The notes: generated by a model from the sequence alone, not told the origin. A DNA stretch of 64,000 nt from Macrostomum hystrix (GCA_950097015.1 CATNEN010000007.1:2480001-2544000), one strand, 5' to 3'; shown: positions 25,122 to 58,716, numbered from the stretch's first letter. Numbers and translations: made by a program.

Positions 25122-25850
25122 TCAATCAAATGGTGACACGCACTCAGCCAGAGCGCCATTGTAAATAGTCCAGTTACGCCTATCATCGTTTAGCTTTGGA
25201 ACGCATGTGCATAGCACGACGTAGTTTTCAACGTTGAAAGAGTTGTCCGGCTGCCCAGCGGTCCACAGTGCGCTGTCGATGCTAGAGTTGCAGCTTGCCC
25301 AGACCCATCCACCAGCGGGCTCCTCGCTGCCTGGCAGCTGCCAACCACCGAGGATTATGCGGTCTGTGGAAAGGCTGCGCATGATTTCGTTGAGGTGACT
25401 CAGCTCATCATCATCGCTTGCGTCGGCCATGATGGTGAGGCCCGGAAGCGCATCGATCACATCCTGGGCCAAGTTCCAGTCATGAATCCCGGAGTAAAAC
25501 TTGTACCGTACGCCACAAAAACTGTGCGCGAATCCTGCAGGACACAGAGCTCCTAGGGGCAGTCCTGGCTGCTGCTTCACAAACACCTGCTTGGTGCGAG
25601 TGCAGTTGCAGTCTGTCACGTACTTGCTGCACCTGTTGAACACGAACAGCTGGCATGGACCGTCGGCCACGCTGAATGCCCGACAGTCGATCATGGGATC
25701 GCAGAGAGTGGCGCACTCGATATTTGACTTGACGCTGCTTCGAGTTTCGATGAACTCGGGTCTAATGCACTGAAGAGCGTGCGTCACTGCGTACTCGTGA
25801 GCCCTGACAAGCCCGGCCAGGTAGAATATAAGCACAATTTGTTGGTTCAT
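25122..25850 (-). CDS. Secreted PAN/apple + C-type lectin, copy A (QPD type), intact
   Basis: Signal peptide; CxxxCx5CxAFSx5CxL PAN motif; LCPAGF..CG; ILGG, WxW, QPDN..EN, LND, terminal EC. Single exon. Confidence 0.88.
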   Translation of the reverse strand: MNQQIVLIFYLAGLVRAHEYAVTHALQCIRPEFIETRSSVKSNIECATLCDPMIDCRAFSVADGPCQLFVFNRCSKYVTDCNCTRTKQVFVKQQPGLPLGALCPAGFAHSFCGVRYKFYSGIHDWNLAQDVIDALPGLTIMADASDDDELSHLNEIMRSLSTDRIILGGWQLPGSEEPAGGWVWASCNSSIDSALWTAGQPDNSFNVENYVVLCTCVPKLNDDRRNWTIYNGALAECVSPFD

Positions 25851-27398
25851 AATTTCAGGGTTTTGGCTTTGTTTATGAAATCTTCAAACCGTAAATTGCC
25901 TTTCTCCGACTGCGCACCATAGATATACCGTCATGGTTTATCATAGCTTGGAATTCTATTGCTCACGCCATTTCATTGGCTGTCTTCGTGATTTGCTAAA
26001 GCGGTCTCTACTAAATCGGAAATTTCTTGACTCATCTGCGATGCTTCATATAAGGAATAGTCGCGACATTAACTGTTAGGCATGTTCTACCTGATCAGTA
26101 ATTTATGAGAAGAAAACTCTAAACACGAAACAAAACCCGAAAGTTTTGATCTCTTGTGAAACTTGCGTTCTTTAATGGTTTATTCGTGCTCAAAGTCTGT
26201 ATCTTTGGTGCTAAAAAAATGTAGTTTCATCGCCAAACAAGCGACTCAAAGCCATTTGCAACTTGCTACAACAAAATTGTCATCTAAGTGATTCACTCAC
26301 TAGTGTCACTTGTAAAGCTCCTAACTAAGCCTAATTGCTACCTACCGCGGATTCAAGCTTCGGACCTCGGTGCGAGTGTTAGTACCGGTACTCCATTCGC
26401 AATTTTTTATAATCGTGTTGACAAAGGCAAACCGTTTTAAATAATTTTGGCTTTCTTTTTTAGATAATTGTTGTTTTTTATCTGCTCTACCACTTACCAC
26501 CTTGAAATAATGCTAAAGTGGTGTGAAGATTCCGCCGCATATTATAAAGCCAGTTTCTGAACGCATTAGTTATACAATTTATTTTTAGAAAATTTCTCAA
26601 GCCGCGAACAATTAAATGGACTCAATATGTGAAAGACTCTTTGTTATGACCAGCTTTGGACGCTGTTGGCTTTGGATGATTGTAGTTTTTTAATCGATTT
26701 AATCCTATTTGTAAAACACGTGGAGCCCTCACTTCGTGTCTAGTGCGTTTTCTACCTTGCAAACATGGTTAACTCTCGACCATATTTCATTATTACCATG
26801 AACGATGATACGATGATATTCGTGGATCAATCCATTAAAAACTAACTAGCGACCACTGCAGGCTTCTAGCACACGCTACTATTCGCAATTATCTGATCGA
26901 AGGTTGTGAATTTGACAGACCGAGTTTTGAATAATGGTTCAGTGTTTGATCAACACTGTTCATTTAAAGAATACCGGAGTCCAAAGCATATATACCTTCG
27001 ATATAATTAAACGTTGCCGTTGCTTTAAAAGCCATAGACTATTCCCCGCGCGGTTATGTACCCCAGTTAACAAGCGAGCCTCCGCACATTCAATTTTCTG
27101 CAATTCCTTCCGCATCTTGCGTTAACAACTCAGCTACATAATCCTCATCCTTTTTGTGTCTAGAAATAGGAATCTTAAATTTATACTTTTAAGGTCCCGG
27201 TGTTTCTAAGCTAAATTGATGTTCAGCTCTATGTCGACATACCAAATCCTAATTAAATATCTAGCTTAAATACCCAAAACTTTTGGTGCCTACCTTTTTG
27301 TAGTCGAATGCGCGCCGTGTGGATTTCATTGGTCGATAAAAACCACAAAAATCTAACAAAATCACAGTTGCAAAATATAAAAACCAAAAGCAAAGCCA

Positions 27399-27560
27399 TT
27401 GTTAGGCTACAGGTTGCCTCTTTGCAAATACTACAACGAAGATGCTGAGCACCTTGTCTGTCAGTACTGTTTCTTTAAAAGAGACCGGCAATCGACGAGG
27501 TTTGCCAGCCCGACGGCATCACGGCTCATCCAGTTCCTTCAGACAAAAAAGAGCCACGTT
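27399..27560 (+). mobile_element. Possible decayed non-LTR C-terminal CCHC fragment
   Basis: LCKYYNEDAEHLVCQYC...LIQFLQ resembles the CxxC..E..EHL..C..R...FL end of LINE ORF2. Confidence 0.3.
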
Positions 27561-28762
27561 CTTGTGACGAGGTCATTTATTTTATAGTCGTATTTTGTCG
27601 TTATTTATCTATGAATTTTTAGTTTCTATGGGAGTTGCATTTTTGTATTCCTAGTGAAGTATATTAATGTGTATTGTCTCCTATTTATCTATATTAAATG
27701 TATAACAGTACATATATTATTCGTTATTTATGCAGCATTGAAAGTCCGTTTGTCGTATACTATATTCAATGTATCTGCGCGCCGTATTTAAAAGCTGATG
27801 TGTTTTCATGCGCCACGTGCTATCCCGTTACCAGTGGTTTTGGACGCAGCGTAGTAATAGTGCTAAAGTGGAGCTGCTGAATCGCCAGCATCATCAGAGA
27901 CTGTCAATACTATTTTGCTAGGCAGTCAAAAAAAATACAATAGTCCATATTAGAGTTGGAGCCGTTATCTTAATAATATAACGAGAGTCCATCGCCGCTA
28001 CACTATTAAGTCCAGCCTTGGTCTTCCTTACTTCTGCAATCGAGTCCTCGAGTGTTACATTCTTCCCAGCGGAAGACAACGCTGCAGGACGGACCGGCGG
28101 ACCACCCTGACCGGCCCTGTGCCATCGCCTGTACGCGGACCCACAGGGGCTGGCGTTATGGGCGACCCTCGCCTCCCCGCTGTGTCCATGGACCACCCTG
28201 CAGCTAAGTCAAGAGCACACAGAAACTGCAGACATTGATACCAGACTCATCGGACAAGCTAAAAGAGTTGCTGTCGTGTGGTATGGCGATGCGTTGATAT
28301 TTTAGGCGAGGAGAGTTTACTATTGGGGTGGTCGCACATTTTAGGCGACGCCTAATAGTTTTGGCAGCGGATTCTCACCGAAATATTCATCATCGAGCGA
28401 TAAAAATCTCAGACTTTCATCTTAAATAGCTTTACTAAACTTATTTCTTCACGGTGTAAAGAAAAAATAGCAGAAAACAAACAAAAATACCTAATGCCTC
28501 CTAGATTAGCTATTGCTACTTGGCCAAACTTTTGTTTGTTTTAATTATATTTATTTACTACTTATTTAATATACAAAACAATCAATTATTTTGCGTTAGG
28601 GCTCATAATTTTAGCCGTGCAATCAAACTAAAAATTATTGAATATGTTAACAACAAAAAAGGCTTTGAACAATTCATAGCGCACAAAAACACACTTCTTT
28701 GCGTACTTTGCTCGTGTCATGCTCGTATTCTCATATGTTCAATGCCGAGCGATTTCAGACAG

Positions 28763-29491
28763 TCAAATAAACGGAGACACACACTCAGCCAGGGCGCCTG
28801 TGTACCTACTCGCTGAGCAGTCATCGTCGTTCAGCTTCGGAATCGTGGAGGGCAGAATCACACAGTCATCGCCAATAACCCAATTATCCGGCTGACCAGC
28901 ATTCCAGAGGCTGCTGTCAATGTTGGAGTAGCAGCTGGCCCAGGACCATCCACCGGCTGGCTCCGCACTGCCTGGGGCTTGCCTGCCTCCGAGAATGATG
29001 TAGGTTTCAGGAACTGTCGTGAACATCGGCTTCACGTGGGAGAGCTCCGCATCATCAGCGATGTCAGCCATGATTGTGAGGCCTGGGAGTGCGTCTATTA
29101 CAGTTTTGGCCAAGTTCCAGTCCTGAATTCCGGCGAAGAGCTTGTACTTGGTGCCGCAGAAGTCGTGAGCGAATCCGGCGGGACACAGAGCTCCGGGCGG
29201 AAGTCCTGATTGCTGCTTCACAAACACCTGCTTGATGCGAGTGCAGCTGCAGTCTCTCACGTACTTGCTGCACCTGTTGAACACAAACAGCTGGCACGGA
29301 CCGTCGGCCATGCTGAATGCCTGGCAGTCAGTTGTTCCATCGCAGATACTAGCGCACTCTATCTTTGACTGAATGCTTCTTGTAGTCTTTACGAACTCGG
29401 GTGCGATGCACTGCAGTCCATTCACATCGTAATACAAACTTGCGTAAGACACAGCAGCCAGTGATGCTAAGATTTCGAAATGAAACAGCAT
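28763..29491 (-). CDS. Secreted PAN/apple + C-type lectin, copy B (QPD, DDC), intact
   Basis: Same architecture as A; 242 aa ORF with ATG and signal peptide. Confidence 0.9.
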   Translation of the reverse strand: MLFHFEILASLAAVSYASLYYDVNGLQCIAPEFVKTTRSIQSKIECASICDGTTDCQAFSMADGPCQLFVFNRCSKYVRDCSCTRIKQVFVKQQSGLPPGALCPAGFAHDFCGTKYKLFAGIQDWNLAKTVIDALPGLTIMADIADDAELSHVKPMFTTVPETYIILGGRQAPGSAEPAGGWSWASCYSNIDSSLWNAGQPDNWVIGDDCVILPSTIPKLNDDDCSASRYTGALAECVSPFI

Positions 29492-31119
29492 TTAAGTGAA
29501 ATTTTTTGACTAGTTTTCTTGGCCGCAACTTACAGGCAGATTAGGAAGTGTCCCTAAACTAAAAAAATGCGCTCCTAGCATTTAAGCGCATTCCCAATTG
29601 ACTTCCACACGAAACGTTTGTCTCCTTTTAGTCGGAAAACTTCTTAACACGCATGTTTTCCAGTTTTTTTAGTTTTCTCCAAAAAGGACGTGAGTTTTTC
29701 TTTTGTCTGAAATTTTACCTAAAACTTGCTGGCACTTGACAAGTTCAGTGATCCGGAACAGTGTTAAACCTTCTGTTAAAATTTTCAGTCAGTTGTATTG
29801 TCAGATACTTAAACAGAATTTTTTAATGCAGACCCTTCTGCTGTTCTATGTATTTTTCTCTTTTGCATTTCGTTTCTCCGTATCGGCGGCTTTAAGTGGC
29901 GATCGAACCGTGCGGGACAGACTGAGACCGATTTCGGGCTTGTTTGCCTTCGTCAGTCAGTCAGCCACAGGAGGTCGGCTCCACCTCAGGTCAGCTGCTT
30001 GGAACTGTCTGCTATTTATGGTGTAATACGATTTTTGTCTGCTATTTTGAGGAATTCGGGCTATGTTTGATGAGTTCTACTTTTAGTAAGCTATCGCATT
30101 CACTTCGCTATGGTGAAAGTCCCTTTAGAATTAAGTCAAATAAGGATAAAAAAACGCCGGAACTCTATTTCGGTCCATAAAGTTGTTTCAAGGACTAATG
30201 CTCGAAATTATGCTTGGATTAGGAACATATTAGACTTTTGTAAATTTCTGTAGATTTCTTCATTATGTTCATTTATGCTGTGGCGCATTGTATCCAGCTT
30301 CAACTCCGCAGCACTCAACCTGTCCTGCAGCTGCTGTACAATGTCGCACTGTCTTTCAAAACGCTCTTATTCTCAGTTTGTGTTTCGACCAAGTCCTCCG
30401 CGTACCCAGTCAGCTCCTGCAGGTCTCCCCTATTCTGCGGCACCGCCTGTAGCAGCCTCGGCCGCGAGACTCTGAGTCGATATGCCTGATACTTCAGGTA
30501 GTCGAGATAGTCCTTTGGGATGTCCTCGAAATTGCCATCCACTGACCACCAGGGCTAAAAAAAGATTATTGAAACATTTGATAAAATCTGGCTTCGAGAT
30601 GGTGCTGTGTTTGTGTTAGTTGTAGAACGAATCCATGCATAGTGTATTTTATTCAAACAATATGCACTCGTTCAAAACAAATCCTTCGATGACGGGATTA
30701 TTTTTCAGCACGTGGATCTTTGTTCCACGTACTTGCGGAGCCACTTTATTACATAATAGATGAAGGAAATTGGCGGGGACAGGAAGCTGATGTGCCTGTG
30801 CTCTTGCAACATATCGTAAAACTTTCTTCTCCAAATCACATTAGCCTTTCTGACATTTTGCTGTTAACGAATTCATCATCATGATGTTCACGAGAATCAG
30901 GAACAAAAAATCATTATGTTGTACTCGGCCCACCAGACAGTCTTCCTGCACAATGAGAACTCGTTTTAAGCGTCTTCGCCTGAGAATATAATCAATCTCT
31001 GATAATAAAAAGCGCGTAACTGCTAATTATAGTCAATACTGATAAATCAATGTCCGGATATTTACTCGACAAATTTGGAAGATAAGGACAAAAGTACAAA
31101 TGGTGTAGTAAGCTATTAG

Positions 31120-31378
31120 ATAATAATGCTAATAATGCAGGCGGGCTGCATTTTCATTTGGTGACGCTACAGCCAGTGCGGACACAACTCTGCCCATTTC
31201 GCTGACTCTTAAGCACACACGCACACAGATACCGTACACGGGCACAAACTTACTCTGGTGTGTACATCTGCCCTGACTTTCTCATAGTCAGGCAGTGTAC
31301 TGTGCCTTGAAGGTTGGTCCTCAAGGGACCGTGGTGCGAGAGGCAAACGCGTTAACCGCTCTGCGACCGACCCCCAAC
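31120..31378 (-). mobile_element. Internally deleted copy of the tRNA-derived SINE at 54248
   Basis: Reverse complement matches 54260-54300 and 54385-54570 (GTTAACGCGTTTGCCTCTCGCACCACGGTCCCT; CTGACTATGAGAAAGTCAGGGCAGATGTACAC). TAA-type tail remnant near 31120. Confidence 0.75.
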
Positions 31379-32774: not shown

Positions 32775-33506
32775 TCAATTAAAGGGGGACACACACTCAG
32801 CCAAGGCGCCTGTGTACCTACTCGCAGAGCAGTCATCGTCGTTCAGCTTCGGAATCGCGGAGGGCAGAATCACACAGTCATCGCCAATAACCCAATTATC
32901 CGGCTGACCAGCATTCCAGAGGCTGCTGTCAATGTTGGAGTAGCAGCTGGCCCAGGACCATCCACCGGCTGGCTCCGCACTGCCTGGGGCTTGCCTGCCT
33001 CCGAGAATGATGTAGGTTTCAGGAACTGTCGTGAACATCGGCTTCACGTGGGAGAGCTCAGCATCATCAGCGATGTCAGCCATGATTGTGAGGCCTGGGA
33101 GTGCGTCTATTGCAGTTTTTGCCAAGTTCCAGTCCTGAATTCCGGCGAAGAGCTTGTACTTGGTGCCGCAGAAGTCGTTTACGAATCCGGCAGGACACAG
33201 AGCTCCGGGCGGAAGTCCTGACTGCTGCTTCACAAACAACTGCTTGATGCGAGTGCAGCTGCAGTCTCTCACGTGCTTGCTGCACCTGTTGAACACAAAC
33301 AGCTGGCACGGACCGTCGGCCATGCTGAATGCCTGGCAGTCGGTTGTTCCATCGCAAAGACTGGCGCACTTAAACTTTGATTTCACATCATTGCGAGTCC
33401 TCACGAACTTTGGTGTCATGCACTGCAGTCCGCTCACTTGGTAGTATTCACACCCACAAGCGAGAGCAGCCAGGGACGCCAAGATCACGCAGTGAAGGAG
33501 GAGCAT
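32775..33506 (-). CDS. Secreted PAN/apple + C-type lectin, copy C (QPD, DDC), intact
   Basis: 243 aa ORF with signal peptide MLLLHCVILASLAALACG; CTLD nearly identical to B and E. Confidence 0.9.
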   Translation of the reverse strand: MLLLHCVILASLAALACGCEYYQVSGLQCMTPKFVRTRNDVKSKFKCASLCDGTTDCQAFSMADGPCQLFVFNRCSKHVRDCSCTRIKQLFVKQQSGLPPGALCPAGFVNDFCGTKYKLFAGIQDWNLAKTAIDALPGLTIMADIADDAELSHVKPMFTTVPETYIILGGRQAPGSAEPAGGWSWASCYSNIDSSLWNAGQPDNWVIGDDCVILPSAIPKLNDDDCSASRYTGALAECVSPFN

Positions 33507-35875: not shown

Positions 35876-36614
35876 TTAGCTCTGTCTTAAATTGAAAGGG
35901 GCAAGACATTCACCCAAGAAGCCATAGTAGCCAGTGTAAGTCACGGTGCCATCGTTAATACCGGGGAAACCCATTCCGTCGAGGGCGAAGTTCTCGGTTC
36001 CAGCGAAGTTGTTCGGCTCTCCGCTCCTCCACAGACTGCCGTCGATGCTGGAGTTGCAGCTGACCCAGTACCAGCCACCGGCTGGCTCAGCGCTGCCCGG
36101 CAGCTGCGTGCCTCCGAGCATCACGACGGACACGCTGTCCCTGACAAGAACAGCTTTCACATGGGCCAGCTCTGATGAGTTAGTGAGATCGGCCATGATT
36201 GTAAGTCCGGGCAACGCATTGGCTGTAGCCTTGGCCGAGTTACAGTCCTGAAATCCGGCGAAGAGCTTGTACTTGGTGCCGCAGAAGTCGTGAGCAAATC
36301 CGGCAGGACACAGAGCTCCGGGTGGCAGTCCCGACTGCTGCTTCACAAACACCTGCTTGATGCGAGTGCAGCTGCAGTCTCTCACGTACTTGCTGCACCT
36401 GTTGAAAACGAACAGCTGGCAGGGACCGTCGGCCACGCTGAATGCCTGGCAGTCAGTTGTTCCATCGCACAGACTGGCGCACTTCAACTTTGATTTCACG
36501 ACATTTCTAGTCCTCACGAACTCGGGTCTCATGCACTGCAGTCCGCTCGCTTCGAAAAAGATACTCGAGTCAGCCAGAGCTACCAGCGAAATCAACAGGA
36601 AAACCTCGCTTCAT
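35876..36614 (-). CDS. PAN/apple + C-type lectin, copy D (EPN type); the nearest ATG is 1 nt out of frame
   Basis: Open frame 36595-35876 with GEPNN..TEN and IND. ATG at 36614 would give MKRVFLLISLVALA only after removing one base. Conserved Trp of DWN is replaced by Cys. Confidence 0.75.
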
Positions 36615-37449
36615 ACTAGCAATACGACAACTCAGTGTCCTTTGTCAGTGACTTGCAATCAGACCAATTCTATGGTTTTTGAGAATAAATTACTTGAGTC
36701 TTCTTTTAAAATACTTCTGACTTTGGGTTGCTCTTGTCTTATATTGAGCCACTAGTCATTGGCTGTGACTCAAGCCAATCGTTTGCCAATGGATGCCGCT
36801 ATGTGTTTTTGTTTTACGAAAAAAAACGTAGCAAATAAACTCAAGTTAAAAAATGTCATCTTAAATGTAATATGCTCTGAAGTTATGGGCTACCTGTGCT
36901 ACTCTGTGTAATATTTCTCGAACTCAGGTGTTTGCTACATCTAATACTTCGGCATTTACTTTACCTTTCAATGAGCTCAGCAAAATATTGAGAAGCAGGT
37001 GTGTACGACGGGGCGCAGATCGACAAACAGAAAATTTAGATCGCAGTCTAGTCTAAACAGGATGATACCTTTTAAAGGTGAAAGTATAACGAGACTAATT
37101 CTATATTGTTTAATAGTCATTTATACAGTTAAAACAAAAAATATGCGATGTACATGTCAGTTAGGTCCTAATGGACACATTCCTTTCTAGTTTAGGCAAA
37201 ACCGTACCTCATAATTGAAATAGGTTTATCCTTTCAGCCGTTTTCCGCAACCAGTTGCATGCCCACACACTTGGCCAGGTAGCCTGAGTAGCGTGATTAA
37301 TAAACGGAGCCATCATTCAGTGGGGACTGGGCAGTTCCAGCAAGAACGTCATACTGCGCAAGGTCATGAGTTCGAAGCTCCAACCACCGAGCAACAAGCT
37401 TCAGCTGCCGCCTTGCAATTTCTATGAAATTTATCCTTTCCAGGATTCT

Positions 37450-38753: not shown

Positions 38754-39485
38754 TCATATGAAAGGAGACACACACTCAGCCAGGGCGCCTGTGTACCTAC
38801 TCGCTGAGCAGTCATCGTCATTCAGCTTCGGAATCGTGGAGGGCAGAATCACACAGTCATTGCCAATAACCCAATTATCCGGCTGACCAGCATTCCAGAG
38901 GCTGCTGTCAATGTTGGAGTAGCAGCTGGCCCAGGACCATCCACCGGCTGGCTCCGCACTGCCTGGGGCTTGCCTGCCTCCGAGAATGATGTAGGTTTCA
39001 GGAACTGTCGTGAACATCGGCTTCACGTGGGAGAGCTCAGCATCATCAGCGATGTCAGCCATGATTGTGAGGCCTGGGAGTGCGTCTATTGCAGTTTTGG
39101 CCGAGTTCCAGTCCTGAATTCCGGCGAAGAGCTTGTACTTGGTGCCGCAGAAGTCGTTTGCGAATCCGGCGGGACACAGAGCTCCGGGCGGAAGTCCTGA
39201 CTGCTGCTTCACAAACACCTGCTTGATGCGAGTGCAGCTGCAGTCTCTCACGTACTTGCTGCACCTGTTGAACACGAACAGCTGGCACGGACCGTCGGCC
39301 ATGCTGAATGCCTGGCAGTCAGTTGTTCCATCGCAGATACTAGCGCACTCTATCTTTGATTTCACATCATTGCGAGTCCTCACGAACTTTGGTGTCATGC
39401 ACTGCAGTCCGCTCACTTGGTAGTATTCACACCCACTAACGAGAGCAGCCAGGGACGCCAAGATCACACATTGAAGGAGGAGCAT
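38754..39485 (-). CDS. Secreted PAN/apple + C-type lectin, copy E (QPD, NDC), intact
   Basis: ATG at 39485 (MLLLQCVILAS) gives 243 aa like C, preceded by acceptor-like actttcattccag. The longer ORF-track start at 39563 is unlikely. Confidence 0.9.
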   Translation of the reverse strand: MLLLQCVILASLAALVSGCEYYQVSGLQCMTPKFVRTRNDVKSKIECASICDGTTDCQAFSMADGPCQLFVFNRCSKYVRDCSCTRIKQVFVKQQSGLPPGALCPAGFANDFCGTKYKLFAGIQDWNSAKTAIDALPGLTIMADIADDAELSHVKPMFTTVPETYIILGGRQAPGSAEPAGGWSWASCYSNIDSSLWNAGQPDNWVIGNDCVILPSTIPKLNDDDCSASRYTGALAECVSPFI

Positions 39486-40616: not shown

Positions 40617-41346
40617 TTAATGAAACGGTGACAAGCATTCAGTAAGGGCGCCGCTGAATGCACCAGAGTTGAGCGGCCCGTCATTGAGAGCCCAAATCGA
40701 AATGTACAGGACAACGTAGTTCTCGTTGCCATTAACATCGTCAGGCTGACCGTCCTTCCACAGATTCACATCGATGCTGGAGTTGCAGCTGGCCCAATAC
40801 CATCCACCGGCTGGCTCAGCGCTGCCCGGCAACTGAAGGCCTCCCACAATCATGTAGGTGGCGGACTCTGCAGTCATTATGGCTTTGACATGAACCATTT
40901 CTGAGTCATCGGTGACATCAGCCATGATGGTGAGGCCTGACAATGAGTCGATGGTGGTCTTTGCCGCATCCCAGTCTCGAATCCCAGCTATGTACTGGTA
41001 CTTTGTACCGCACATGTCGTGAGCGAATCCGGCAGGACACAGAGTTCCGGGCGGCAGTCCCGACTGCTGCTTCACAAACACCTGCTTGATGCGAGTGCAG
41101 CTGCAGTCTATCACGTACTTGCTACACCTGTTGAACACGAACAGCTGACACGGACCGTCGGCCACGCTGAATGCCTGGCAGTCGAGCCTGGCATTGCACA
41201 GACTGGCGCACCTCGTCTTTGATAGAATATGGGTCCGAGTCTCCACAAAGTCGGATTTCATGCAGTGCAGTCCGCTAACTCTGTGGTATTCACCCCCACA
41301 AACGGCAGCAGCCAGGGACGCTGAGATCACAGTGAAGAAGGAGCAT
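40617..41346 (-). pseudogene. PAN/apple + C-type lectin, copy F (QPD), with a 2-bp deletion in the signal peptide
   Basis: ATGCTCCTTCTTCACTGTGATC versus CACTGTGTGATC in copy H; the ATG frame hits a stop after 18 codons. The rest of the ORF is open. Could be an assembly error. Confidence 0.7.
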
Positions 41347-41967: not shown

Positions 41968-42403
41968 TCAATTAAAGGTAGCAAGGCATACACCCCAGAA
42001 GCCAGAATAGCCAGTCACGGTGCCATCGTTAATACCGGGGAAACCCATTCCGTCGAGGGTGAAGTTCTCGGTTCCAGCGAAGTTGTTCGGCTCTCCGCTG
42101 CTCCACAGACTGCCGTCGATGCTGGAGTTGCAGCTGACCCAGTACCAGCCACCGGCTGGCTCAGCGCTGCCCGGCAGCTGCGTGCCTCCGAGCATCACGA
42201 CGGACACGCTGTCCCTCACAAGAACAGCTTTCACATGGGCCAGCTCTGATGAGTTAGTGAGATCTGCCATGATTGGAAGCCCTGGCAACGCATGATTGTG
42301 AGACCCGAACTCGGGTCTCATGCACTGCAGTCCGCTCATTTCGTAATAGGTACTCGAGTTAGCCAGAGCTATCTGCGAAATCAACAGGAACCTCGTCTCT
42401 CAT
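41968..42403 (-). pseudogene. Copy G (EPN type) with an in-frame loss of 95 codons removing most of the PAN domain and the central block
   Basis: QCMRPEF is joined via GSHNH to ALPGL. About 297 nt of copy D are replaced by 12 nt. Shares 5' and 3' flanks with D. Confidence 0.8.
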
Positions 42404-42799
42404 ACTACGCTCGTAGTAGTACTACAACTCAGAGTTCTCCGTCAGTACTTTGCAATTAGGCCAGTTCTGATGTATTTTGAAACCATAAATTTCTCAAACT
42501 CAACTGCTTACATCGACTGATTCTGAGAAATTTACTTGAGTCATCTTGTAAAATATTTCTGACTTTGGGTTGCACTTGTTTTATATTGAGTCATTAGTGA
42601 TTGACTGTGGCCAAAGCAAATAATTTGCTGAATTATGCTAAGAGTTATGCTATGCTCGTACTATGCAATTTTACTGTCTTGTTATGCGACAAAATGGAAT
42701 TTCTCAACAAATATGCGCAGGTATAAAAGTGGCCTTTTTATAAAATATAAATTCTGATACTAAGGCTACATGCGCTACTTTCAGTATTATGTATCTGGT

Positions 42800-44427
42800 G
42801 TTTACCGCAGAGGTCGCACTGCCAGAAGAAAGCTCTTTCAACACCAGTCCTATCACCATTGACGAGGTGCTTCTGCTCGCTAAGAAGACACCGGGCGGCA
42901 AAGCCACCGGACCCGATGACGTGCCTGTCGAAGTGTTGCGCCTCCCGCTGGTGGCGCAAGAAGTCACGCAAGTGATGAACTGCGTGCTGGCGGGAGGTCC
43001 CGCCCCCGCTGAATGGCGGACGGCGCACATCGTCGGGATCCAGAAGAAGCCCGGAACTGTCAAGGTCGAAGAGCATCGCGGAATATCCCTAATGTCCTGC
43101 GCCGCGAAGCTGTACAACAGGGTGCTGCTGACGCGGCTGCAACCTGTGTTGGACCCGTTCCTCCGGCGAGAGCAAAACGGCTTCCGGCCAGGTAGGGGCA
43201 CGGTGAATCAGATTCTCGCTTTGCGCCGCATTTTAGAAGAGACCCGTATCCACCAGTCGGCGGTCATCTGCATCTTCGTGGATTTTCTAAAGGCCTTCGA
43301 CTCGGTGTCGAGACGGGTCATCCCGAAGATCCTGCGCGCGTACCATGTGCCTGAGCAGCTGGTAACGGCTGTGATGGCCCTGTACCAGGAGACCAGGGCG
43401 GCAGTTGTGACGCCGGACGGCCTATCCGATTTCTTCGACACGACCTCCGGTGTGCTGCAGGGCGACACACTCGCCCCCTTTCTGTTCGTCCTGGTCCTGG
43501 ACTGGGTGCTGCGCACTGGCCTCCCTGACGACGCCAACGGCTTTCTGCTCTGTCGCAGGACAAGCAGCCGACACCCCGAAAGACGACTCTCTGTCCTGGC
43601 GTACGCGGACGACCTGGCGCTGCTGTCCAGCTCAATCGAAGGTGCTCAGCATCTGCTGGACAAGCTGACTGCGGCGGCGGCAATGGTCGGGCTGTCCGTG
43701 AACACCAAGAAAACAATAGTGCTGACCGTCCCAAATGACCTCAACGGCGAGATCTTCTGCCACAGCGTAAATGGGCAAGCGGCATTGCTGCCGCGCTGCG
43801 AGACCTTCATCTATCTCGGCGGTCAAGTGCCCGACATCCTGGACGACATGGCGCGACGCAGGGCGCTTGCCTGGGCAGCCTTTCGCACCCTGCGGACTGT
43901 CCTGCAGTGCCCCACGCTGCCGGATCGGCTGAGAGGGCGGTTGTTTCAAGCCGTCATAGAGACCGTCTTTCTCTACAACGCTCAAACGTGGACTCTGAAC
44001 GGCACACAGGAGAAGCAACTCGATGCCGCCCACGCCGGACTCCTGCGAGCCGCCTTCGGCGTCCACTATTCGCCGACTGCCGTCACCAACACCAGCAACG
44101 ATGAGCTCTATCGCCGGGCCCAGCTCTGCCGGCCAAGTCAGCTGCTGCGCATCCGGCGCCTGCAGCTGGCTGGCCACGTCATCCGTGCGGAGCAGCACTG
44201 CCCCGAGCCACTGCAGGACGTGCTGCTGCTTTCCCTGCAGGGGCCCCGGCGGCGTGGTCAGGCGAGGGCGCTACGCTATCCTGAACTGCTATTGACTGAC
44301 GCTGAGATCTCTGACCCTCGTGGACTGACAATTCTGCGCCACTCTGCTCTTGCGCGTGCCTTTTGACGGCAGCCCCTCTGGCTTCGGCCTTGGGTTGTCG
44401 TCCTTTGTTGTTGTTGTTGTTGTTGTT
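42800..44427 (+). mobile_element. 5'-truncated RTE-like non-LTR retrotransposon with an uninterrupted RT frame (ORF 42789-44366)
   Basis: KATGPD, HRGISL, QNGFRPGR, FVDFLKAFDSV, GVLQGDTLAPFLF, YADD. No endonuclease domain. Short 3' UTR and (TTG)n tail at 44405-44427. No clear TSD. Confidence 0.92.
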
Positions 44428-44776
44428 CCGATTTATAAAAGCTTTTATGAAATGGTTAGATAGCATTTAAACTCGAGCTAAGCAGCCAAAAAAGACCATA
44501 GACATCAGAGGTTGGAATCGAGCTCTTTCTAAGAGAAAATACTCTAATTAAATAGGGAAAACAGGATTTTATTGATTTTAAAGGCTCATCATTGACAGAT
44601 TGAAATGTGAGTTAAACCACTTAGTCACAAAAGATTAGCAAAGGCAATGAAAATGGTCAAGCGGTTCACTCTGTAGACCATTTCAGCCGATTTAGTATCG
44701 CAGGAATGCATTAAATGCATTGTTGGTTTCGGAAAACTCTAGAATATTTCTTCGATTTTAATTGAAATCTTGAAAC

Positions 44777-46440
44777 TGTTATGCTGTGCGAGCCTTGTTG
44801 GCATCATATAAATCACTACTGTACTGCATTCATTATCTGTTGTTCCGAGCTATGCAAACCGGCAATGAGCGCAAGACGTACCACCTCTTCTTCCGGGCTG
44901 TCGCTCTGCTTCAAAGAGTCGAATTTGCAGTGTGTCGCTGCCTTTCTTACCCGGGCTAGATAGTGAGTAATTGGCTCGTCAGCACTCTGCCGAAGCGTAA
45001 AGAAGTTTGTCCGCTCAGCCACAACTAAGCGCGTTTGAGGTTGAAGATAGGCTACAAGTGCAGCCTCCACGTTTGTAAAGAGCATTTCTTCAACATCACG
45101 CGGAGCGACCAAGTGTGATAGCTTTTCCAGTGTGGCCAGCCCACAGGATGACAGGAAATGATCCGTGATTTGCCGTGTCTCAGTCGTATCGGTCCATTTG
45201 TTAGCACGAGCCAGCGCTTTGAATGCTTTTAGCCAAGTGAGAGCCCGATCTGCGTTGTTGAGATCCAGTTCACCTAGCCGCGACGCCATTGTCGTGAATG
45301 TGTGGTGCAGTATATTGGCCTTGCTTTTGTTGGAATATGATTTGCCTTTTGCTGATGGCAGTTTGTATTTTTCAGCTTCACGCAACACGAACTCTAACAG
45401 AACGACAGGCGCGGGTTAAAGACTTAAAGGGACACGCCAGGTTGGGGCATAGACAATAAACGAAGCAGCAGCGCTTTTGCTAGTAATAACGAAACTAAAT
45501 GATACGCGATGAACAACAGATAACGAATGCAGTACAGTAGTGATTTATATGATGCCAACAAGGCTCGCACAGCATAACATGTCCCCCTTCCGATAAGAAA
45601 GGTGCAGGAGAAGAAACCAACGAATGATAATACATAGTAGTTATAGAATGCGAATAAACAAAACCATATAGTGTGTTGTCAGTTAGGACTCCAATTCAAT
45701 TGAGATGGGACAGTAATTTATAGATCATGGCTCAAAACGATCAGGTGCGCGCCGAGCACGCGCGCTCCTGCGCGGTGCAAATCCAGCTTCCTGTTGGTCA
45801 TTCGCAGGCTGCTCCTCCTGGTCCAGGACCTCAGAAGCGGCTTCCTCCTCCTCCTCTCCAGTCCCAGGTAGCGGGGCAATTTGGTTGTTGCTCGCCAGTC
45901 GCAATTGAGTCCGTTCAGGAAACTGGAAAGATTGCTCAGAAGCGGAGATGCCGTTCAAGAAGGTAGCTGAGCGCCTGACGATTGAGAATGGTCTGTTGTA
46001 CATGGGAAGGCGTATCTTCATCCCGCCTCGACTCCGCCTCGAAGCATTCAAAGCGGTTCACGATACTCATTCAGGAGTTTCTGCGACATACAATCTGCTG
46101 TCTCTGACCTGCTGGTGGCCTGGAATGCATCACGACACGGAGGAGTTTGTGCGCCAGTGCTATGCATGCGCTAAATTGAGGCCACGTCTGATGAAGTCAC
46201 GCGACATTTGGCCCCCGGCATTGGCCCCATTCCAGAGAGTCCACATGGATTGGGCCTTTGTACCTGGAGTTGGGAACATTCTGATAGTTGTCGATGCCTT
46301 TTCCGGATGGATTGAGGCCTTTCCATCAAAGGATAGATCTGCCGAAAGCGTCCTGAAGTGCCTCCGAACTGTGTTTTGCCGGTTTGGTGTTCAAGAGGTC
46401 TTAGTTTCCGATAACGGAGCCGAATTTACATCTGACGTTT
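44777..46440. mobile_element. Rearranged Ty3/Gypsy LTR retrotransposon relic
   Basis: + LTR 5' fragment 44777-44845; - gag start 45289-44846 (AERTNFFTLRQ..EPITHYLARVR); - LTR 45579-45290 (TGTTATG...GACA) preceded by PPT GGAAGGGGGACA and followed by TGGCG; - pol C-terminus 45947-45725 (PRRSARARRAPDRF); + integrase 45948-46440 (HDTH..C..C, VHMD, VSDNG). Confidence 0.88.
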
Positions 46441-46443
46441 TGT

Positions 46444-46610
46444 TGCTCGGAGGCACGCAGCTGCCGGGCAGTGCTGAGCCAGCCGGTGGCTGGTACTGGG
46501 TCAGCTGCAACTCAATCTTCCACGGCAGTCTGTGGAGCAGCGGAGAGCCGAACAAGACTTCGCAATCGCTCGAATGGGCACCGTGAGTTACACTGGCTAC
46601 TCTGGCTCCT
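46444..46610 (+). pseudogene. Copy K: inverted, decayed 3' fragment of a D/G-type (EPN) lectin gene
   Basis: LGGTQLPGSAEPAGGWYWVSCNS..GSLWSSGEPN followed by a deletion. Downstream flank to about 46900 is homologous to the flank of G. Confidence 0.85.
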
Positions 46611-47312
46611 TGGGTGAATGAGTCGCTCCCTTTAATAATTGACAGAGCTAAATGCTTGAGCAGCTTCAACGCTTTCTGTCAGATTGGCTACTTTTAAGAC
46701 AGCAGCTAAGAAGCTTTTTTGAATATAAGGGAGGAATCGCTACAGAGCGTGAGTCTACCAGTGCGCTGTGAGAAGACTCATTGAAATGACTTATTTAGTG
46801 CTAAATCAAGGCAAGTTTTTATAACGTGTACTTTCATAACTGATACAATTGAAAGCAGACAACGCTTAACGATACTGTTTCGTGTCGTTTACTTCCAAAA
46901 CTTTCACTAGCCCAATAGCCTGCCTTTTGTTCCTATGCCAGGATCCCTACAGAAGAACTCAGGCTCAGTTAGCTGAGACTTTTTTATTTTCTGGCTGTTT
47001 CCTTCCTGGCTGTGAGTCAATAAGGAAGACGAAAGGTGTTTAACTGCAGCCTTCTTTGCCTCGCTTCCGCAAAGTGCTAATGCACATGTTAATTGCTCTA
47101 TTAAGCATCCATTTAAGCCAACGCAGTACCCTCTGCCGAAAATTTTCTTCTGCATTGACGCATAGATGCATAGATGTATAGAGCGTCAATAGTCCAACTG
47201 AAACACTTATTTCCTGAATAACATATGGATTACCAGCGATTTACAAACTGAGTTACTGGTAACCGCTTACTGTTTGCTGAATGTGTCTTGTTGGATCACC
47301 TGAAAGTTTTGG

Positions 47313-48004
47313 ACAGACGCTACCAGGCTGTGCACAGCTCGCAGTAGCTGTACAGACGCTACCTGGCTGTGCACAGCTCGCAGTAGCTGTACAGACGCTA
47401 CCTGGCTGTGCACAGCTTGCAGTAGCTGTACAGACGCTACCTGGCTGTGCACAGCTCGCAGTAGCTGTACAGACGCTTCCTGGCTGTGCACAGCTCGCAG
47501 TAGCTATACAGACGCTACCTGGCTGTGCACAACTCGCAGTAGCTGTACAGACGCTACCTGGCTGTGCACAGCTCGCAGTAGCTGTACAGACGCTACCTGG
47601 CTGTGCACAGCTCGCAGTAGCTGTACAGACGCTACCTGGCTGTGCACAGCTCGCAGTAGCTGTACAGACGCTACCTGGCTGTGCACAGCTCGCAGTAGCT
47701 GTACAGACGCTACCTGGCTGTGCACAGCTCGCAGTAGCTGTACAGACGCTTCCTGGCTGTGCACAGCTCGCAGTAGCTATACAGACGCTACCTGGCTGTG
47801 CACAACTCGCAGTAGCTGTACAGACGCTACCTGGCTGTGCACAACTCGCAGTAGCTGTACAGACGCTACCTGGCTGTGCACAGCTCGCAGTAGCTGTACA
47901 GACGCTACCTGGCTGTGCACAGCTCGCAGTAGCTGTACAGACGCTACCTGGCTGTGCACAGCTCGCAGTAGCTGTACAGACGCTACCTGGCTGTGCACAG
48001 CTCG
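47313..48004. repeat. 39-bp minisatellite (GCAGTAGCTGTACAGACGCTACCTGGCTGTGCACAGCTC), about 18 copies
   Basis: 39-bp period; the (AVAVQTLPGCAQL)n ORF arises because 39 is divisible by 3. Confidence 0.97.
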
Positions 48005-48699
48005 TAGGTACGAGCCAAACAACCCATCGATTTAAAAACTAAAAGAATACAGAAGGCGACAAGCTGCTTTGGAATGGTTAGCGCACCAACTTTACATTGC
48101 GTTGCGATTATTGCTGATTTCCTACTCTAGTAAAAAAATAGATAAATGTTAATTATTCGGTCTCTATGTGTCGACGGTGCCGTCACCGTTAAATCTAAAT
48201 AATAAAGTACAACAGTTCACTAGCTAAGTGCACGATATGTGCAGACTACAAACCAGCAAATTGTGCATTCGTAGAAATAATCTGACTCGTTATAAAACTT
48301 TCTCAAAGTTTGAAAGGAGAAATGCGACTTAAATGCTTTATTCGCTCGAAAGTACACTTTCAAATGCAGATTTCCGTGTTCATAGAAAAAGAACTGATAA
48401 GAAAAGCTAAACCGATTCTAGAAACTTAGAGGTTCAACATCATGTGATCAGCTGTACGGAGGGAACGAAAAAATAATGAACAGAAAGCGTTGTCAAGACG
48501 ACTCGAAACTCAAATGTAGCTGATACGCTCGAATGCAGAGTTGGTTGCAAACCAACCTAAAACAAAGGTAGATTTTCAGTTTAAACTTCTGCAACCAAGT
48601 ATCCAATTCATATCCGTATCCGTATTTCGTATCCGTATTCATCCAATACGAGTATTCAGCTCTAAAGTTACAACCATCAAGACTTTCTTTCACCCAAGA

Positions 48700-49320
48700 A
48701 TGCTCCTTCTTCACTGTGTGATCTCAGCGTCCCTGGCTGCTGCCGTTTGTGGGGGTGAATACCACAGAGTTAGCGGACTGCACTGCATGAAATCCAACTT
48801 TGTGGAGACTCGGACCCATATTCTATCAAAGACGAGGTGCGCCAGTCTGTGCAATGCCAGGCTCGACTGCCAGGCATTTAGCGTGGCCGACGGTCCGTGC
48901 CAGCTGTTCGTGTTCAACAGGTGCAGCAAGTACGTGAGAGACTGCAGCTGCACTCGCATCAAGCAGGTGTTTGTGAAGCAGCAGTCGGGACTGCCGCCCG
49001 GAGCTCTGTGTCCTGCCGGATTCGCTCACGACATGTGCGGTACAAAGTACCAGTACATAGCTGGGATTCGAGACTGGGATGCGGCCAAGACCACCATCGA
49101 CTCATTGCCAGGCCTCACCATCATGCCATCATGTCAAAGCCATAATGACTGCAGAGTCCGCCACCTACATGATTGTGGGAGGCCTTCAGTTGCCGGGCAG
49201 CGCTGAGCCAGCCGGTGGATGGTATTGGGCCAGCTGCAACTCCATCATCGATGCGAATCTGTGGAAGGACGGTCAGCCGGACAACGCTGAAGGCAAAGAG
49301 AACTACGTCGCCCTGCACAT
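48700..49320 (+). pseudogene. Copy H: inverted PAN + C-type lectin (QPD), frameshifted and 3'-truncated
   Basis: ATG at 48700 (MLLLHCVISAS). 30 nt are replaced by CCAT at about 49126 (net -26, frameshift). Homology ends after ALHI at about 49322. Confidence 0.85.
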
Positions 49321-50107
49321 CCAGAACATCCAGCACATTCTGGAGGACAACGCCCTCCAGAAATACATCTCATAACTCGATCAGTTCCTCGGGCCCAGCC
49401 TTGAACTGGCGGGGTGGAAAATCCACATTCAGAATTGTAAAAGAGCCTCCATCCAACATGCTCGGTGTTCCATTAGAGTTCTTTGCAACCCAGTTTTCCG
49501 ACGTGTCTTACGGTTATATCCTTCATAAAGTTGTTTGATTCTCGCTAATTTTTTGCGTTGTTACAAAATTAGCTACTGCAAACAGGATTAGTTTCCTAGT
49601 TTTCCTAGAAAAAGACTTACGCTCAATAGGGTAGGTACCTCGAAACCCCGAAATCTCTTAGAGCCATTACACTATTCTTTCACTAAGTCGTGACATTTTA
49701 GCTGTCAATTGTCTTTCTAATTGAATTTACTACGATCGTTTTCTGGAGAGTAACTTATGCGCTTATCTCTACCGGAAAATCTGGCTGCAAATTTAATATG
49801 ACGTAAACCACTCAATATGCCTTGATAGTGCTGATTATTTGGTAGGCCTGTGTACATACACAGACAGTGATACATCAGGAAGTGAATCTATTTGCGTGTA
49901 GTAAACGATACCTTGGAAGTGCTTTACTATTCCAATTTTAGCTCGTATATTCTAGCTTCAGTCCTCAGTCAAAACTAGAGGTAAGTTTTTTAGGCGGGAA
50001 TTAGGCGAACCATCTGCAGCCTCACCTAAAGAGCAAAAAGTAAGAAAGCACTAAGCCAAGTTTTCCATAAAATATAGCATTTTGCAGTTCAGTCCTCATT
50101 TCCAGAT

Positions 50108-50850
50108 TTACTGAAACGGTGACAAGCATTCAGCCAGGGCGCCGCTGAATGCACCAGAGTTGAGCGGCCCGTCATTTAGATAAGGAATGGTGATGTGCAG
50201 GGCGACGTAGTTCTCTTTGCCTTCAGCGTTGTCCGGCTGACCGTCCTTCCACAGATTCGCATCGATGATGGAGTTGCAGCTGGCCCAATACCATCCACCG
50301 GCTGGCTCAGCGCTGCCCGGCAACTGAAGGCCTCCCACAATCATGTAGGTGGCGGACTCTGCAGTCATTATGGCTTTGACATGAACCATTTCTGAGTCAT
50401 CGGTGACATCAGCCATGATGGTGAGGCCTGGCAATGAGTCGATGGTGGTCTTGGCCGCATCCCAGTCTCGAATCCCAGCTATGTACTGGTACTTTGTACC
50501 GCACATGTCGTGAGCGAATCCGGCAGGACACAGAGCTCCGGGCGGAAGTCCTGACTGCTGCTTCACAAACACCTGCTTGATGCGAGTGCAGCTGCAGTCT
50601 CTCACGTACTTGCTGCACCTGTTGAACACGAACAGCTGGCACAGACCGTCGGCACAGTGAATGCCTGGCAGTCGAGCCTGGCATCGCACAGACTGGCGCA
50701 CATGATTTCAAATCTGACAGAATCGTGTTTGTCCACAAAGTTTGAGTTCAAACACTGCAGTCCGCTAACAGCGTGATAAACTCCAGCACCAGCCAGAGTT
50801 GCAAGTGAGACCACGAGAATGAGTTGTTGGGTCAATCGTACGTTAGTCAT
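50108..50850 (-). pseudogene. Copy I: PAN + C-type lectin (QPD) with a 1-bp frameshift near 50652
   Basis: ATG at 50850 (MTNVRLTQQLILVVSLATLAGA). GTGCCGAC versus GTGGCCGAC in paralogs. Both halves are otherwise open; could be an assembly error. Confidence 0.75.
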
Positions 50851-51611
50851 GGATTGCGATTCACAAAGGAGTTTCCAACAGATCAAGTCGCATAAGTCAC
50901 ATTGGCAAGACAGTGCCAAAAAGGAATTCTTCACAACCTTTAGAAAACTCTGTTCATCTCTGTAAAACTCAGTGATGGTTTTAAGATCATGTGGTGCCTC
51001 CTTTCACTTGCACTTCATTGGTTGCTGCATGACATCCTGAATGAAATTCATAACAGCCAATGTGCCCAGAATCGGATGCTGTCGAGTCCAGCCAATGTCT
51101 TGTCTTGTACCTGGCGAAATGTAGATAATCAAGGAAGTTGGCTCATTGTACTCTCAAAGTATCGCTGCTGCTTGGCCAATCACTAGACGATAGAAAAATC
51201 AGAGAAACATATTCTTACAGAAAGTTAGGTCATCGTTTTTATTGGAGTTTTAGCATGTTTGTAGCCATGGCTCCCAATGTGCTGTCAGACGGTCTTATTT
51301 GGGCTACTTTTGCATGAATGTCTTCCATTTTTTTACTTTATTTTTAACTTGCCGACAACCACAGCAAGCATACTCAGACAGTCACTCTGCTGACCATAAA
51401 GACAGAAGGCGAGGATCTAAAGGCTGCAGGACCTAGCTATTCCTTCATCCTAGAAGCAATCCTGTGCAATTTTCTCCGTGTTTCACAAAAGCTCGGCTTT
51501 CAACAAGTTAATGAAAAAATTGGTCGAAAAAAGCATTATTCAGGTGTGTGTTTCTGTCAGTAAAATTGTAATTTGTAAATTTGTAAATTGTAAATTGTAA
51601 ATTGTAAATTG

Positions 51612-52118
51612 TAAATAGATTATGTAGTAAGTGCAAAACAGAAGTTGAAAACGAGGTCCACTTCCTTTTTAAGTGCACTTGGAATAAATATAGCGCAGCA
51701 CGTTCGAAATTTGAGACGGAAGTTTCTGGGAAAACCCCCAATTTCATATCCTTAACAGCAGAAGAAAAATCTAACTACATAATGGCTCAAGACGATAGGG
51801 AAACCGCTGAAGCTTTAGCAAAATACATCATAGAAATATCTAAAATAAGGGAACAGCTGCCCTGAGACTACGAGATCTTACTAGCATTCAACAATAGATA
51901 TTTCATATTTTGTTTTATCCCTGCCGTCCCTTGTGTTTTACTGCTCTTATTTTTAATACCTTTGCTTTCCCTTCCCAGCTCGATATTTGATTCCTACTAA
52001 ACTTCGCTTTTTATGTTGCTTTTCGTTGTTCATTTAAATGTGTTGTTAAAAAAAATATAATAAAAAAAATCAGCACCCATAGATGGCGTGCGCGTTTTAA
52101 TAATAATAATAATAATAA
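51612..52118 (+). mobile_element. 3' end of a non-LTR retrotransposon (CCHC tail, 3' UTR, (TAA)n)
   Basis: NRLCSKCKTEVENEVHFLFKC..Y...R motif; 3' UTR ends AATCAGCACCCATAGATGGCGTG.GCGTTTTAA plus a TAA tail; second copy at 55669-56150. Confidence 0.75.
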
Positions 52119-52556
52119 ATTACAGGATGTGATGCTTCGATTCCAGCTGCTGTGACACAGAATGCCGCGATTCTGGTTGTCGCAATTACAGGATTTTATT
52201 TCTCGAATTTTAGCCACAAAATTTATGTACTACAGACAAATTAGAAGACAACAAAGGTATTCACTGGTATCAAAGTACCAACACCCAATGATAAAAAACA
52301 GAAAACAATTGCTTCTTTTATTTCACACATATTCATTCATTTTAGTTTAGCATCCAATAAGCGACGCATTTGAATAACACATGACTTTGATAACTTTAGA
52401 TTTATTTTAGTCGTAGCAGTGAGAAAGGATTGCGAAGAAATAATTTGTCAGGTGTTAGCTTTTGTTTCAAATAAACGATGCATTGCGGGTTGTATACCAA
52501 GAGCGGAGAGCTGGCGAAGAGGACGATTAAAAGTCTGCACAGCCGCAAGCTTCTGA

Positions 52557-53300
52557 TTAATCAAACGGTGAGACACACTCAGACATGGCCCCAATGTAGT
52601 CACTCGATGCAGCAACCGCATCGTTCATTTTGGAAGGCCACAGCGTACCAAAATTCTCCATGCCACCAGCGTTGTCTGGCTGGCTGTTGCTCCACAGGCT
52701 GCTGTCGATGGCTGAGTTGCAGGTAGCCCAGAACCAGCCGCCCGCTGGCTCAAGGCTGCCTGGAAGCTGCCTGCCTCCGACTATCACTGTTGCCCAGTGG
52801 TTTCTAGCCAGAATCGATGTCAGATGATTCGACTCCGTTAAGTTCGTGATTTCAGCCATGATTGTGAGGCCAGGAAGGGCGTCGATCGAAGTCTTGGCCA
52901 AGTTCCAGTCCTGAATCCCGGCATAGAGCTTGTACTTGGTGCCGCAGAAGTCGTCAGCGAACCCGGCAGGACACAAAGCTCCGGGCGGCAGTCCCGACTG
53001 CTGCTTCACAAACACCTGCTTGATGCGAGTGCAGCTGCAGTCTCTCACGTACTTGCTGCACCTGTTGAACACAAACAGCTGACACGGACCGTCGGCCACG
53101 CTGAATGCCTGGCAGTCAGTTGTTCGATCGCACAGAGTGGCACACTCAAGGTCAGATCTGGCGTCGTTGTGGGCCTGAAGGAACTGAGGCCTCACGCACT
53201 GCAGCCCATTGATCTCCGAGTAGATGCTCAAAACAGGCCGCCATCCGCAGATGGCGAAGGTGCAAAAGCACAGAAGGGCTTTGAGAATTTTTTCTGGCAT
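52557..53300 (-). CDS. Secreted PAN/apple + C-type lectin, copy J (QPD, MND), intact
   Basis: 247 aa ORF with signal peptide; divergent CTLD but the shared central block. Confidence 0.88.
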   Translation of the reverse strand: MPEKILKALLCFCTFAICGWRPVLSIYSEINGLQCVRPQFLQAHNDARSDLECATLCDRTTDCQAFSVADGPCQLFVFNRCSKYVRDCSCTRIKQVFVKQQSGLPPGALCPAGFADDFCGTKYKLYAGIQDWNLAKTSIDALPGLTIMAEITNLTESNHLTSILARNHWATVIVGGRQLPGSLEPAGGWFWATCNSAIDSSLWSNSQPDNAGGMENFGTLWPSKMNDAVAASSDYIGAMSECVSPFD

Positions 53301-58655: not shown

Positions 58656-58716
58656 AAACTGACAAAGAACAGACGCCAATATCGAATGAATGAAATTACA
58701 AAGAAGTCGAGCTCAC

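Follow-up and report, generated by a model that had tools for sequence, protein, structure and literature searches.

Organization of the lectin-like array

We analyzed a window of 64,000 nucleotides from the free-living flatworm Macrostomum hystrix (assembly GCA_950097015.1, contig CATNEN010000007.1, here called C7; window C7:2480001-2544000), in which 11 pieces of one lectin-like gene family lie between 25.1 and 53.3 kb, each of them a single open reading frame (ORF). An earlier, sequence-only reading of this DNA had described 11 intronless copies with variable ends around a constant core, a count that holds when the broken copies and one fragment are included. Our analysis shows that a short internal block of these genes is homogenized down to its synonymous sites, while both ends consist of old module types that occur in different pairings, a pattern most probably explained by germline gene conversion between the paralogs.

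Seven copies (A, B, C, D, E, F, and J) have full-length ORFs, H and I are broken, G has lost its core, and one further piece is a fragment; about half of the copies in the window appear broken. An in-frame ATG followed by a hydrophobic leader is found in A, B, C, E, and J only. All of these five are on the minus strand and intact: A (25122-25850, 242 amino acids, core at ∼25503-25688), B (28763-29491, 242 amino acids, core at ∼29144-29329), C (32775-33506, 243 amino acids, core at ∼33156-33341), E (38754-39485, core at ∼39135-39320), and J (52557-53300, 247 amino acids, core at ∼52932-53117). Copy B has its own N-terminal front and J has both a front and a C-type lectin-like domain (CTLD) of its own, while A marks the edge of the array. 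Copy F (40617-41339, minus strand, core at ∼40998-41183) carries a 2-nt deletion right after the ATG, which puts the start out of frame, and in copy G (41968-42384, minus strand), which is of the D type, an internal deletion removes the core and fuses the front straight to the CTLD. Two copies are pseudogenes, namely H (48703-49285, inverted to the plus strand, core at 48865-49050), which has lost 26 nt and had its 3′ end replaced, and I (50108-50817, minus strand, core at ∼50489-50674), which has a different front and lacks a single nucleotide at the 5′ border of its core.

Copy D (35876-36595, minus strand, core at ∼36269-36454) combines a front and core like those of C and E with an EPN-type CTLD as in G. 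The nearest ATG of D is out of frame, so that this copy may be a pseudogene or may use an alternative start. D (window positions 36560-36640) and G (42380-42440) have this ATG in common, shifted by one base relative to the frame of the long ORF, and despite it the ratio of nonsynonymous to synonymous differences (pN/pS) between their CTLDs is ∼0.24. We can only speculate that in D a trans-spliced leader start past an AG a few bases downstream would yield a normal signal peptide.

A homogenized core between diverged ends

We defined the core as nt 163-348 (186 nt) of the coding sequence (CDS) of copy B. Core identity is 92-98% among copies B to J and 84-87% to copy A, whose core is the most diverged, compared to 58-67% between deep types in the remaining CDS; the near-invariant block of about 190 nt noticed from the sequence alone is thus borne out. 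Within the core, a 77-nt stretch of copy E (39199-39275) recurs without a single change in H (48910-48986, plus strand), I (50553-50629), and J (52996-53072), so that even the two pseudogenes retain the perfect 77-mer. B and D carry one mismatch to it, C and F two, exactly as reported before, and A carries four.

Sliding-window Nei-Gojobori analysis of the distant copies A, B, D, F, and J revealed proportions of synonymous differences (pS) of 0.6-0.85 in both ends and a deep valley at about codons 52-115, which reaches 0.00 at codons 76-90. Synonymous divergence is therefore not uniform along the gene. At third positions, 6-14 of 62 differ in the core compared to 71-87 of ∼160 in the flanks (Fisher p 8e-5 to 5e-9). 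The same contrast is seen at four-fold degenerate sites of codons with identical amino acids, where divergence is 0.10-0.17 in the core versus 0.5-0.66, i.e., near saturation, in the flanks, indicating that the high flank values are not an artefact of amino acid change. Thus, the block is more alike between paralogs at synonymous sites than its flanks are, as is characteristic of interlocus conversion, and the earlier argument that protein-level selection alone does not freeze synonymous sites is upheld by this contrast.

The G/C content at third positions is 0.76 in the core versus 0.61-0.63 in the flanks, an excess of the kind expected from GC-biased conversion. Of the variable third positions left in the C7 cores, half are in CpG context, compared to 13/62 third positions overall, which suggests that what outlasts homogenization is largely recurrent mutation. 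The same enrichment hints at CpG hypermutability in this genome.

Mosaic copies and exchange tracts

Difference tracks along the alignment show that the copies are mosaics. Copy E tracks C over nt 1-120 and B thereafter, and a single CTLD is common to B, C, and E. Copy D tracks C and E to about nt 390 and then continues into an unrelated EPN-type CTLD, which it has in common with G. F and H have the same front, and the CTLD is common to F, H, and I except for a 19-nt patch that differs in F (within nt 601-660); I departs from F and H as far as about nt 180 and matches them without differences thereafter. Each module assortment listed in the sequence-only reading, i.e., those of B/C/E, D, E, F/H, and H/I, was recovered in these tracks. 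Copy I is of the F/H type on either side, yet its core bears a synonymous pair, TCA..CTT, that is otherwise limited to B, C, and E, and the pair includes one transversion that does not lie in a CpG. We read this pair as a probable short conversion tract.

Separate trees of the N-terminal, core, and C-terminal segments, proposed earlier as a check on the shuffling of modules, proved incongruent, with branches of 0.3-0.9 substitutions per site in the two end segments compared to 0.005-0.03 in the core. In approximately unbiased (AU) tests, the C-terminal segment rejected a clade of copies C, D, and E (p 9e-6) and a clade of the genes L007, L008, and L009 from sister clusters on C7 (p 0.0013; see below). 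The N-terminal segment did not reject a clade of B, C, and E (p 0.33), so that the mosaic nature of D rests on the C-terminal segment together with a runs test; L009 and L008 do not differ at all in the N-terminal segment, which left the AU test of L009 there without information. The runs test, a Sawyer-type permutation test for runs of identical polymorphic sites, gave p ≤ 0.0005 for 11 pairs. Adjacent segments with discordant phylogenies are thus accompanied by significant shared tracts, the combination typical of interlocus conversion. Together, these patterns support the view that recombination between paralogs has re-paired N- and C-terminal modules, with junctions inside the core or at its edges.

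Young coding sequence in old surroundings

In a self-comparison of the window, homology between the copies was limited to the ORFs. When the 800 nt on each side of eight copies were compared in a sensitive search, the only homology was a 26-nt stretch behind the stop codons of F and I. Since nothing is shared in the 800-nt surroundings of the ORFs, the copies are old. The flanks cannot be aligned even for B/C/E and F/I, although their CTLDs are 98-99% identical; pS between the B/C/E CTLDs is 0.06-0.09, and F, H, and I are about equally close. Such young coding sequence within old, unalignable surroundings is a signature of non-reciprocal transfer between old paralogs. The variable modules themselves represent deep lineages, with pS of 0.3-0.8 and pN/pS of ∼0.5, rather than variants that arose in quick succession. 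In both ends pN is high (0.3-0.5), and pN/pS is 0.45-0.53 with synonymous sites partly saturated; no pN/pS above 1, which would indicate positive selection on the ends, was found.

The wider family and the hybrid gene L009

A profile search of the genome (220 Mb, 42 contigs) identified at least 152 family matches among 317 candidates on at least 13 contigs, most of them full-length and without stops. About 50 members were sampled for a comparison between clusters. The amino acid sequence of the core is conserved family-wide, and variants of the core are specific to the individual clusters, within which they are near-uniform. In cluster C1, none of 141 four-fold sites differ in the core, compared to 0.22 in the C-terminal flank, and core four-fold divergence is 0.03-0.06 in clusters C25a, C25b, C3a, and C3b. 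In the C3 clusters the uniform block continues through the body of the CTLD (∼470 bases), and only the front and the last ∼40 codons, corresponding to the predicted sugar-binding loops, are of deep types.

One spot within the core, codons 84-88 (TRIKQ in the window), varies between clusters by multi-nucleotide amino acid changes (TRIKQ, TRTAQ, SRTGQ, SRRGQ, NRTGR), while the synonymous sites around it remain unchanged across clusters. For one member, L044 (C9:1421900-1422950), the longest ORF (274 amino acids) runs antisense to the lectin gene; this is not general in the family.

Gene L009 in a sister cluster (C7:2.909-2.914 Mb) has no differences to L008 over nt 1-300 and almost none to L010 and L013 from nt 181 to its end. 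Its upstream flank is L008-like, its downstream flank is L010/L013-like, and it is positioned between L010 and L008. By sequence and position, L009 is evidently a hybrid gene derived from unequal crossing-over with a junction within the core. The clusters at C7:2.711-2.720 Mb (L007/L013/L017) and 2.897-2.915 Mb (L008/L010/L011) represent a recent segmental duplication, 190 kb apart, whose genes and flanks are 94-98% identical; the hybrid is present in the second only.

A word-based protein search with copy J found no relatives at E ≤ 1e-5, metagenome contigs scanned with a back-translated family profile yielded no relative, and we found no description of this lectin-like family in Macrostomum or other flatworms in the literature. 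The genome encodes a very large and apparently undescribed family of small, predicted secreted, two-domain lectin-like proteins.

Predicted domains and position of the core

The sequence-only reading had labeled the products as PAN-C-type-lectin proteins. Pfam recognizes neither domain: Lectin_C (PF00059) matched 0 of 29 members at E ≤ 0.1, and no copy reaches the gathering score of a PAN family (E 0.013-0.7 for PAN_1, PAN_3, and PAN_4), with sub-threshold hits of 10-14.5 bits, where bit scores are given, compared to cut-offs of 21-27. Structure prediction and profile matches stand behind the lectin half of the label. In an AlphaFold2 model of B, residues 103-240 have predicted local distance difference test (pLDDT) values of 70-93, and a Foldseek search of the C-terminal domain against the PDB retrieved CD23, snake galactose lectins, CEL-I, and carbohydrate-recognition domain 4 of the mannose receptor (E 5e-8 to 1e-6, TM score by target 0.75-0.81). 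The family profile matched codakine (2.5e-6), the mosquito C-type lectin mosGCTL-1 (1.4e-4), and the apple domain of Eimeria EtMIC5 (7e-4). Based on the models as well as the profiles, the C-terminal domain is predicted to adopt the CTLD fold. The conserved W196 is followed by QPDN or EPNN and then by an xND motif (LNDD, INDG, or MNDA), all placed by eye on the alignment. The copies in the window are without the first cysteine pair (W..C...C), which is present in the C1, C25, and C3 copies.

For the N-terminal domain, the best of the AlphaFold2 models of residues 20-107 alone has a pLDDT of 87.7 (39-66 for the other four) and a beta-beta-alpha-beta-beta-beta topology. Its top Foldseek matches are mostly PAN domains (SRK, the N domain of HGF, plasminogen, the apple domains of kallikrein and FXI, leech antiplatelet protein, and EtMIC5), but at weak scores (E 0.14-3, TM score by query 0.4-0.53), so that the PAN assignment rests on weaker fold and profile evidence than the CTLD call. 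In the full-length model, confidence is low across the core (pLDDT 30-48). On these models, the core would comprise the last three strands of the PAN-like domain, a linker, and the first hairpin of the lectin domain, and would thus be a scaffold rather than a domain. The most variable stretch of the proteins falls in the predicted sugar-binding loops. From the predicted fold, a role of the proteins in recognition may be proposed. The nearest clusters in the ESM Atlas are mollusc proteins of ∼230 amino acids with Lectin_C and PAN_1, indicating that the two-domain build is not new.

Neighborhood of the array

Remains of a retroelement lie between G and H (window 42789-46586), including an ORF with a reverse transcriptase domain (RVT_1; 42789-44366, plus strand) and an integrase ORF (Integrase_H2C2, rve; 45948-46586, plus strand). 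The latter runs into and reads through a fragment with a D/G-type CTLD (46140-46556, plus strand), indicating that the insertion truncated a further lectin copy. Between the retroelement and H, about 10 copies of a 78-nt tandem repeat (96-98% identical) occupy 47281-48042. The window also contains an amiloride-sensitive sodium channel gene (ASC, E 2e-22; 9597-12539, plus strand), a transposase-like ORF with helix-turn-helix DNA-binding domains (22441-23481), and a sodium:neurotransmitter symporter gene of the SLC6 type (SNF, E 1.6e-46; 57538-60441, minus strand), in which a tandem repeat (58027-58780) lies between two coding ORFs.

Origin of the homogenized core

The most likely explanation, in our view, is that strong constraint on the protein keeps the core of the paralogs alike enough to recombine in the germline, and that interlocus gene conversion together with unequal crossing-over then holds its synonymous sites fixed and brings the ends into new pairs. 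The array would then be an old tandem cluster of a single-exon family with at least 150 genes, whose product is predicted to be a small secreted protein with a PAN/apple-like and a C-type-lectin-like domain. Strong purifying selection on the core protein would keep the core DNA recombination-competent, and repeated conversion with occasional unequal crossing-over would in turn homogenize it, synonymous sites included. The valley in synonymous divergence, the mosaics, the hybrid gene, the dependence on linkage, and the predicted folds are what the data show; the mechanism of conversion, its feedback with constraint, and a role in recognition are our inference. The two ends would have diverged past the reach of conversion and persist as ancient module types. 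Exchanges that start or end in the core would then re-pair fronts and lectin modules in the germline over evolutionary time.

Conversion is expected to act more strongly between linked copies. Among pairs matched for their flanks (amino acid divergence 0.4-0.55, flank four-fold divergence 0.52-0.55), core four-fold divergence is 0.11-0.15 for copies on the same contig versus 0.32 for copies on different contigs, although the pairs are not independent of each other. This dependence supports our interpretation. Several other observations weigh against it. At four-fold sites, divergence between the C7 cores and the cores of clusters C1 and C25a, which lie on other contigs, is 0.14-0.21, hardly more than within the window's own cluster (0.14-0.16). 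Moreover, the differences between these clusters are mostly in amino acids (8-9 amino acids versus 3-4 synonymous codons, in 50), which simple local conversion does not predict. Even in the deepest pairs the core remains below the flanks (0.40 versus 0.67), and 31-mers of the core are also present in sequencing runs of four other organisms and in wastewater metagenomes.

These points would fit an alternative in which the nucleotide sequence of the core itself is selected, e.g., as an RNA motif, a small-RNA target, or regulatory DNA within the CDS, and conversion is minor: the synonymous conservation extends to clusters on other contigs, whose differences are mostly nonsynonymous. When contigs of four runs were aligned to window positions 52500-57950, only the core of J (∼52850-53147) was covered, in pieces of 44-183 nt at 84-92% identity, compared to pieces of 58-90 nt at 81-86% on the neighboring SLC6 exon. 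Such a cross-species alignment cannot separate constraint from conversion. The 84-92% identity of the other organisms' contigs, orthologous or not, to the J core compares with 92-100% within the cluster, and the other clusters of this genome are equally distant. Selection on the nucleotides is at odds with several results. Core four-fold divergence climbs to 0.39-0.57 between deep subfamilies, indicating that the nucleotides are not fixed as such, and the core-to-flank rate ratio between groups ranges from 0 to ∼0.5. RNA folding of the core is no better than that of shuffled sequences (z -0.45), a search of the whole window for Rfam families came up empty, and none of the alternative reading frames of the core is open with any consistency, so that another DNA- or RNA-level constraint, named in the sequence-only reading as what might overturn it, found no backing in these searches. 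Moreover, core divergence depends on linkage, and the mosaics and the hybrid gene show that exchange occurs. We therefore regard selection on the nucleotide sequence as an unlikely, though the most serious, competitor.

A recent expansion, in which the low synonymous divergence of the core reflects the true age of the family and the divergence of the ends is due to positive selection or, as in conotoxins, to targeted hypermutation or selection of that kind, would account for the high pN of both ends and for the concentration of variation in the predicted sugar-binding loops. Young tandem duplicates, however, would have alignable intergenic DNA, and the near saturation of four-fold sites in the ends, pN/pS values of about one half rather than above 1, and the recurrence of identical module types in differing combinations make this scenario improbable. 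The possibility that errors in assembly or polishing spread one core over all the paralogs can be practically dismissed: nothing was found in its favor, the same pattern is seen in more than 50 genes on many contigs with cluster-specific cores, and core 31-mers occur in runs from three studies of the same organism as well as in those of other organisms.

The sequence-only reading had further suggested that the core is a recombination hub of a diversification system, germline or possibly somatic. Its germline part, i.e., the re-pairing of modules, is backed by the runs test, the AU tests, the L009 hybrid, and the synonymous pair in copy I; the notion of an evolved system and of somatic action gained no support, since ordinary germline exchange in old tandem families suffices. 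Programmed diversification, with the core as a defined recombination site that makes new lectin combinations in individuals, is echoed in the variable-constant-variable architecture and the germline mosaics only. Nothing beyond ordinary germline exchange was observed, about half of the copies look broken, and junctions lie outside the core as well (in E at about nt 120, in D at about nt 390, and in F at the patch within nt 601-660). Furthermore, no recombination signal or repeat flanks the core, and a probable RNA run of the same organism contained no contigs matching J. We thus consider programmed diversification very improbable. We also see little likelihood in a milder variant, in which the core is kept beyond its role in the protein as a shared recombination site because selection favors the reassortment of PAN fronts and CTLD loops into a germline combinatorial recognition repertoire, possibly with extra somatic exchange. 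All in all, the array looks like a rather ordinary instance of partial gene conversion, and nothing points to machinery devoted to diversity or to somatic action.

As such, the array is a clean natural example of partial concerted evolution, with a short internal block that is synonymously frozen, ancient ends, and an exact hybrid between two parents. Parts of one exon differ in their history, and hence annotation and dN/dS scans in this genome need caution. Should a function in recognition be confirmed for the proteins, the family could serve as a starting point for studies of how non-parasitic flatworms build binding diversity.

Comparison with known systems

Among diversified recognition families of invertebrates, the FREPs of snails and Sp185/333 of sea urchins are known, and somatic diversification has been reported for them. 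The flatworm family resembles these in its clustered genes for secreted lectin-type or mosaic proteins and in its mosaic sequence patterns, but its domains differ and no somatic diversification was seen. The mollusc proteins with Lectin_C and PAN_1 have the same size and the same two-domain build (language-model score 0.95, 177-183 of 256 features shared), but no alignment-based link to the flatworm family, since the word search was empty and Pfam Lectin_C did not match.

The MHC, Ly49, and KIR natural killer receptor genes belong to immune multigene families whose evolution involves conversion as well as the shuffling of exons or domains. As in these families, the flatworm genes form tandem clusters with hybrids from unequal crossing-over, and old lineages of putative binding modules appear re-paired on a conserved scaffold. 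In contrast to them, the flatworm genes are single-exon, so that exchange takes place inside one exon and not between exons, and any immune role of theirs is putative.

The closest parallels are cases of region-limited interlocus gene conversion in tandem families, as described for KRTAP1 (bioRxiv 10.1101/282418), Drosophila duplicates (PMC2588116), Caenorhabditis paralogs (PMC3966223), and HMA4 (bioRxiv 10.1101/2025.10.29.685298). Such cases have in common with the flatworm array a block within the paralogs that is homogenized at synonymous sites while its neighbors diverge, homology that stops at the coding edges, significant exchange tracts, and homogenization that depends on linkage. Unlike in those cases, the block in the flatworm array is internal, only ∼190 nt long, and spans a domain boundary, with old module types at both ends, and the family comprises at least 150 genes, in which each cluster carries its own version of the core.

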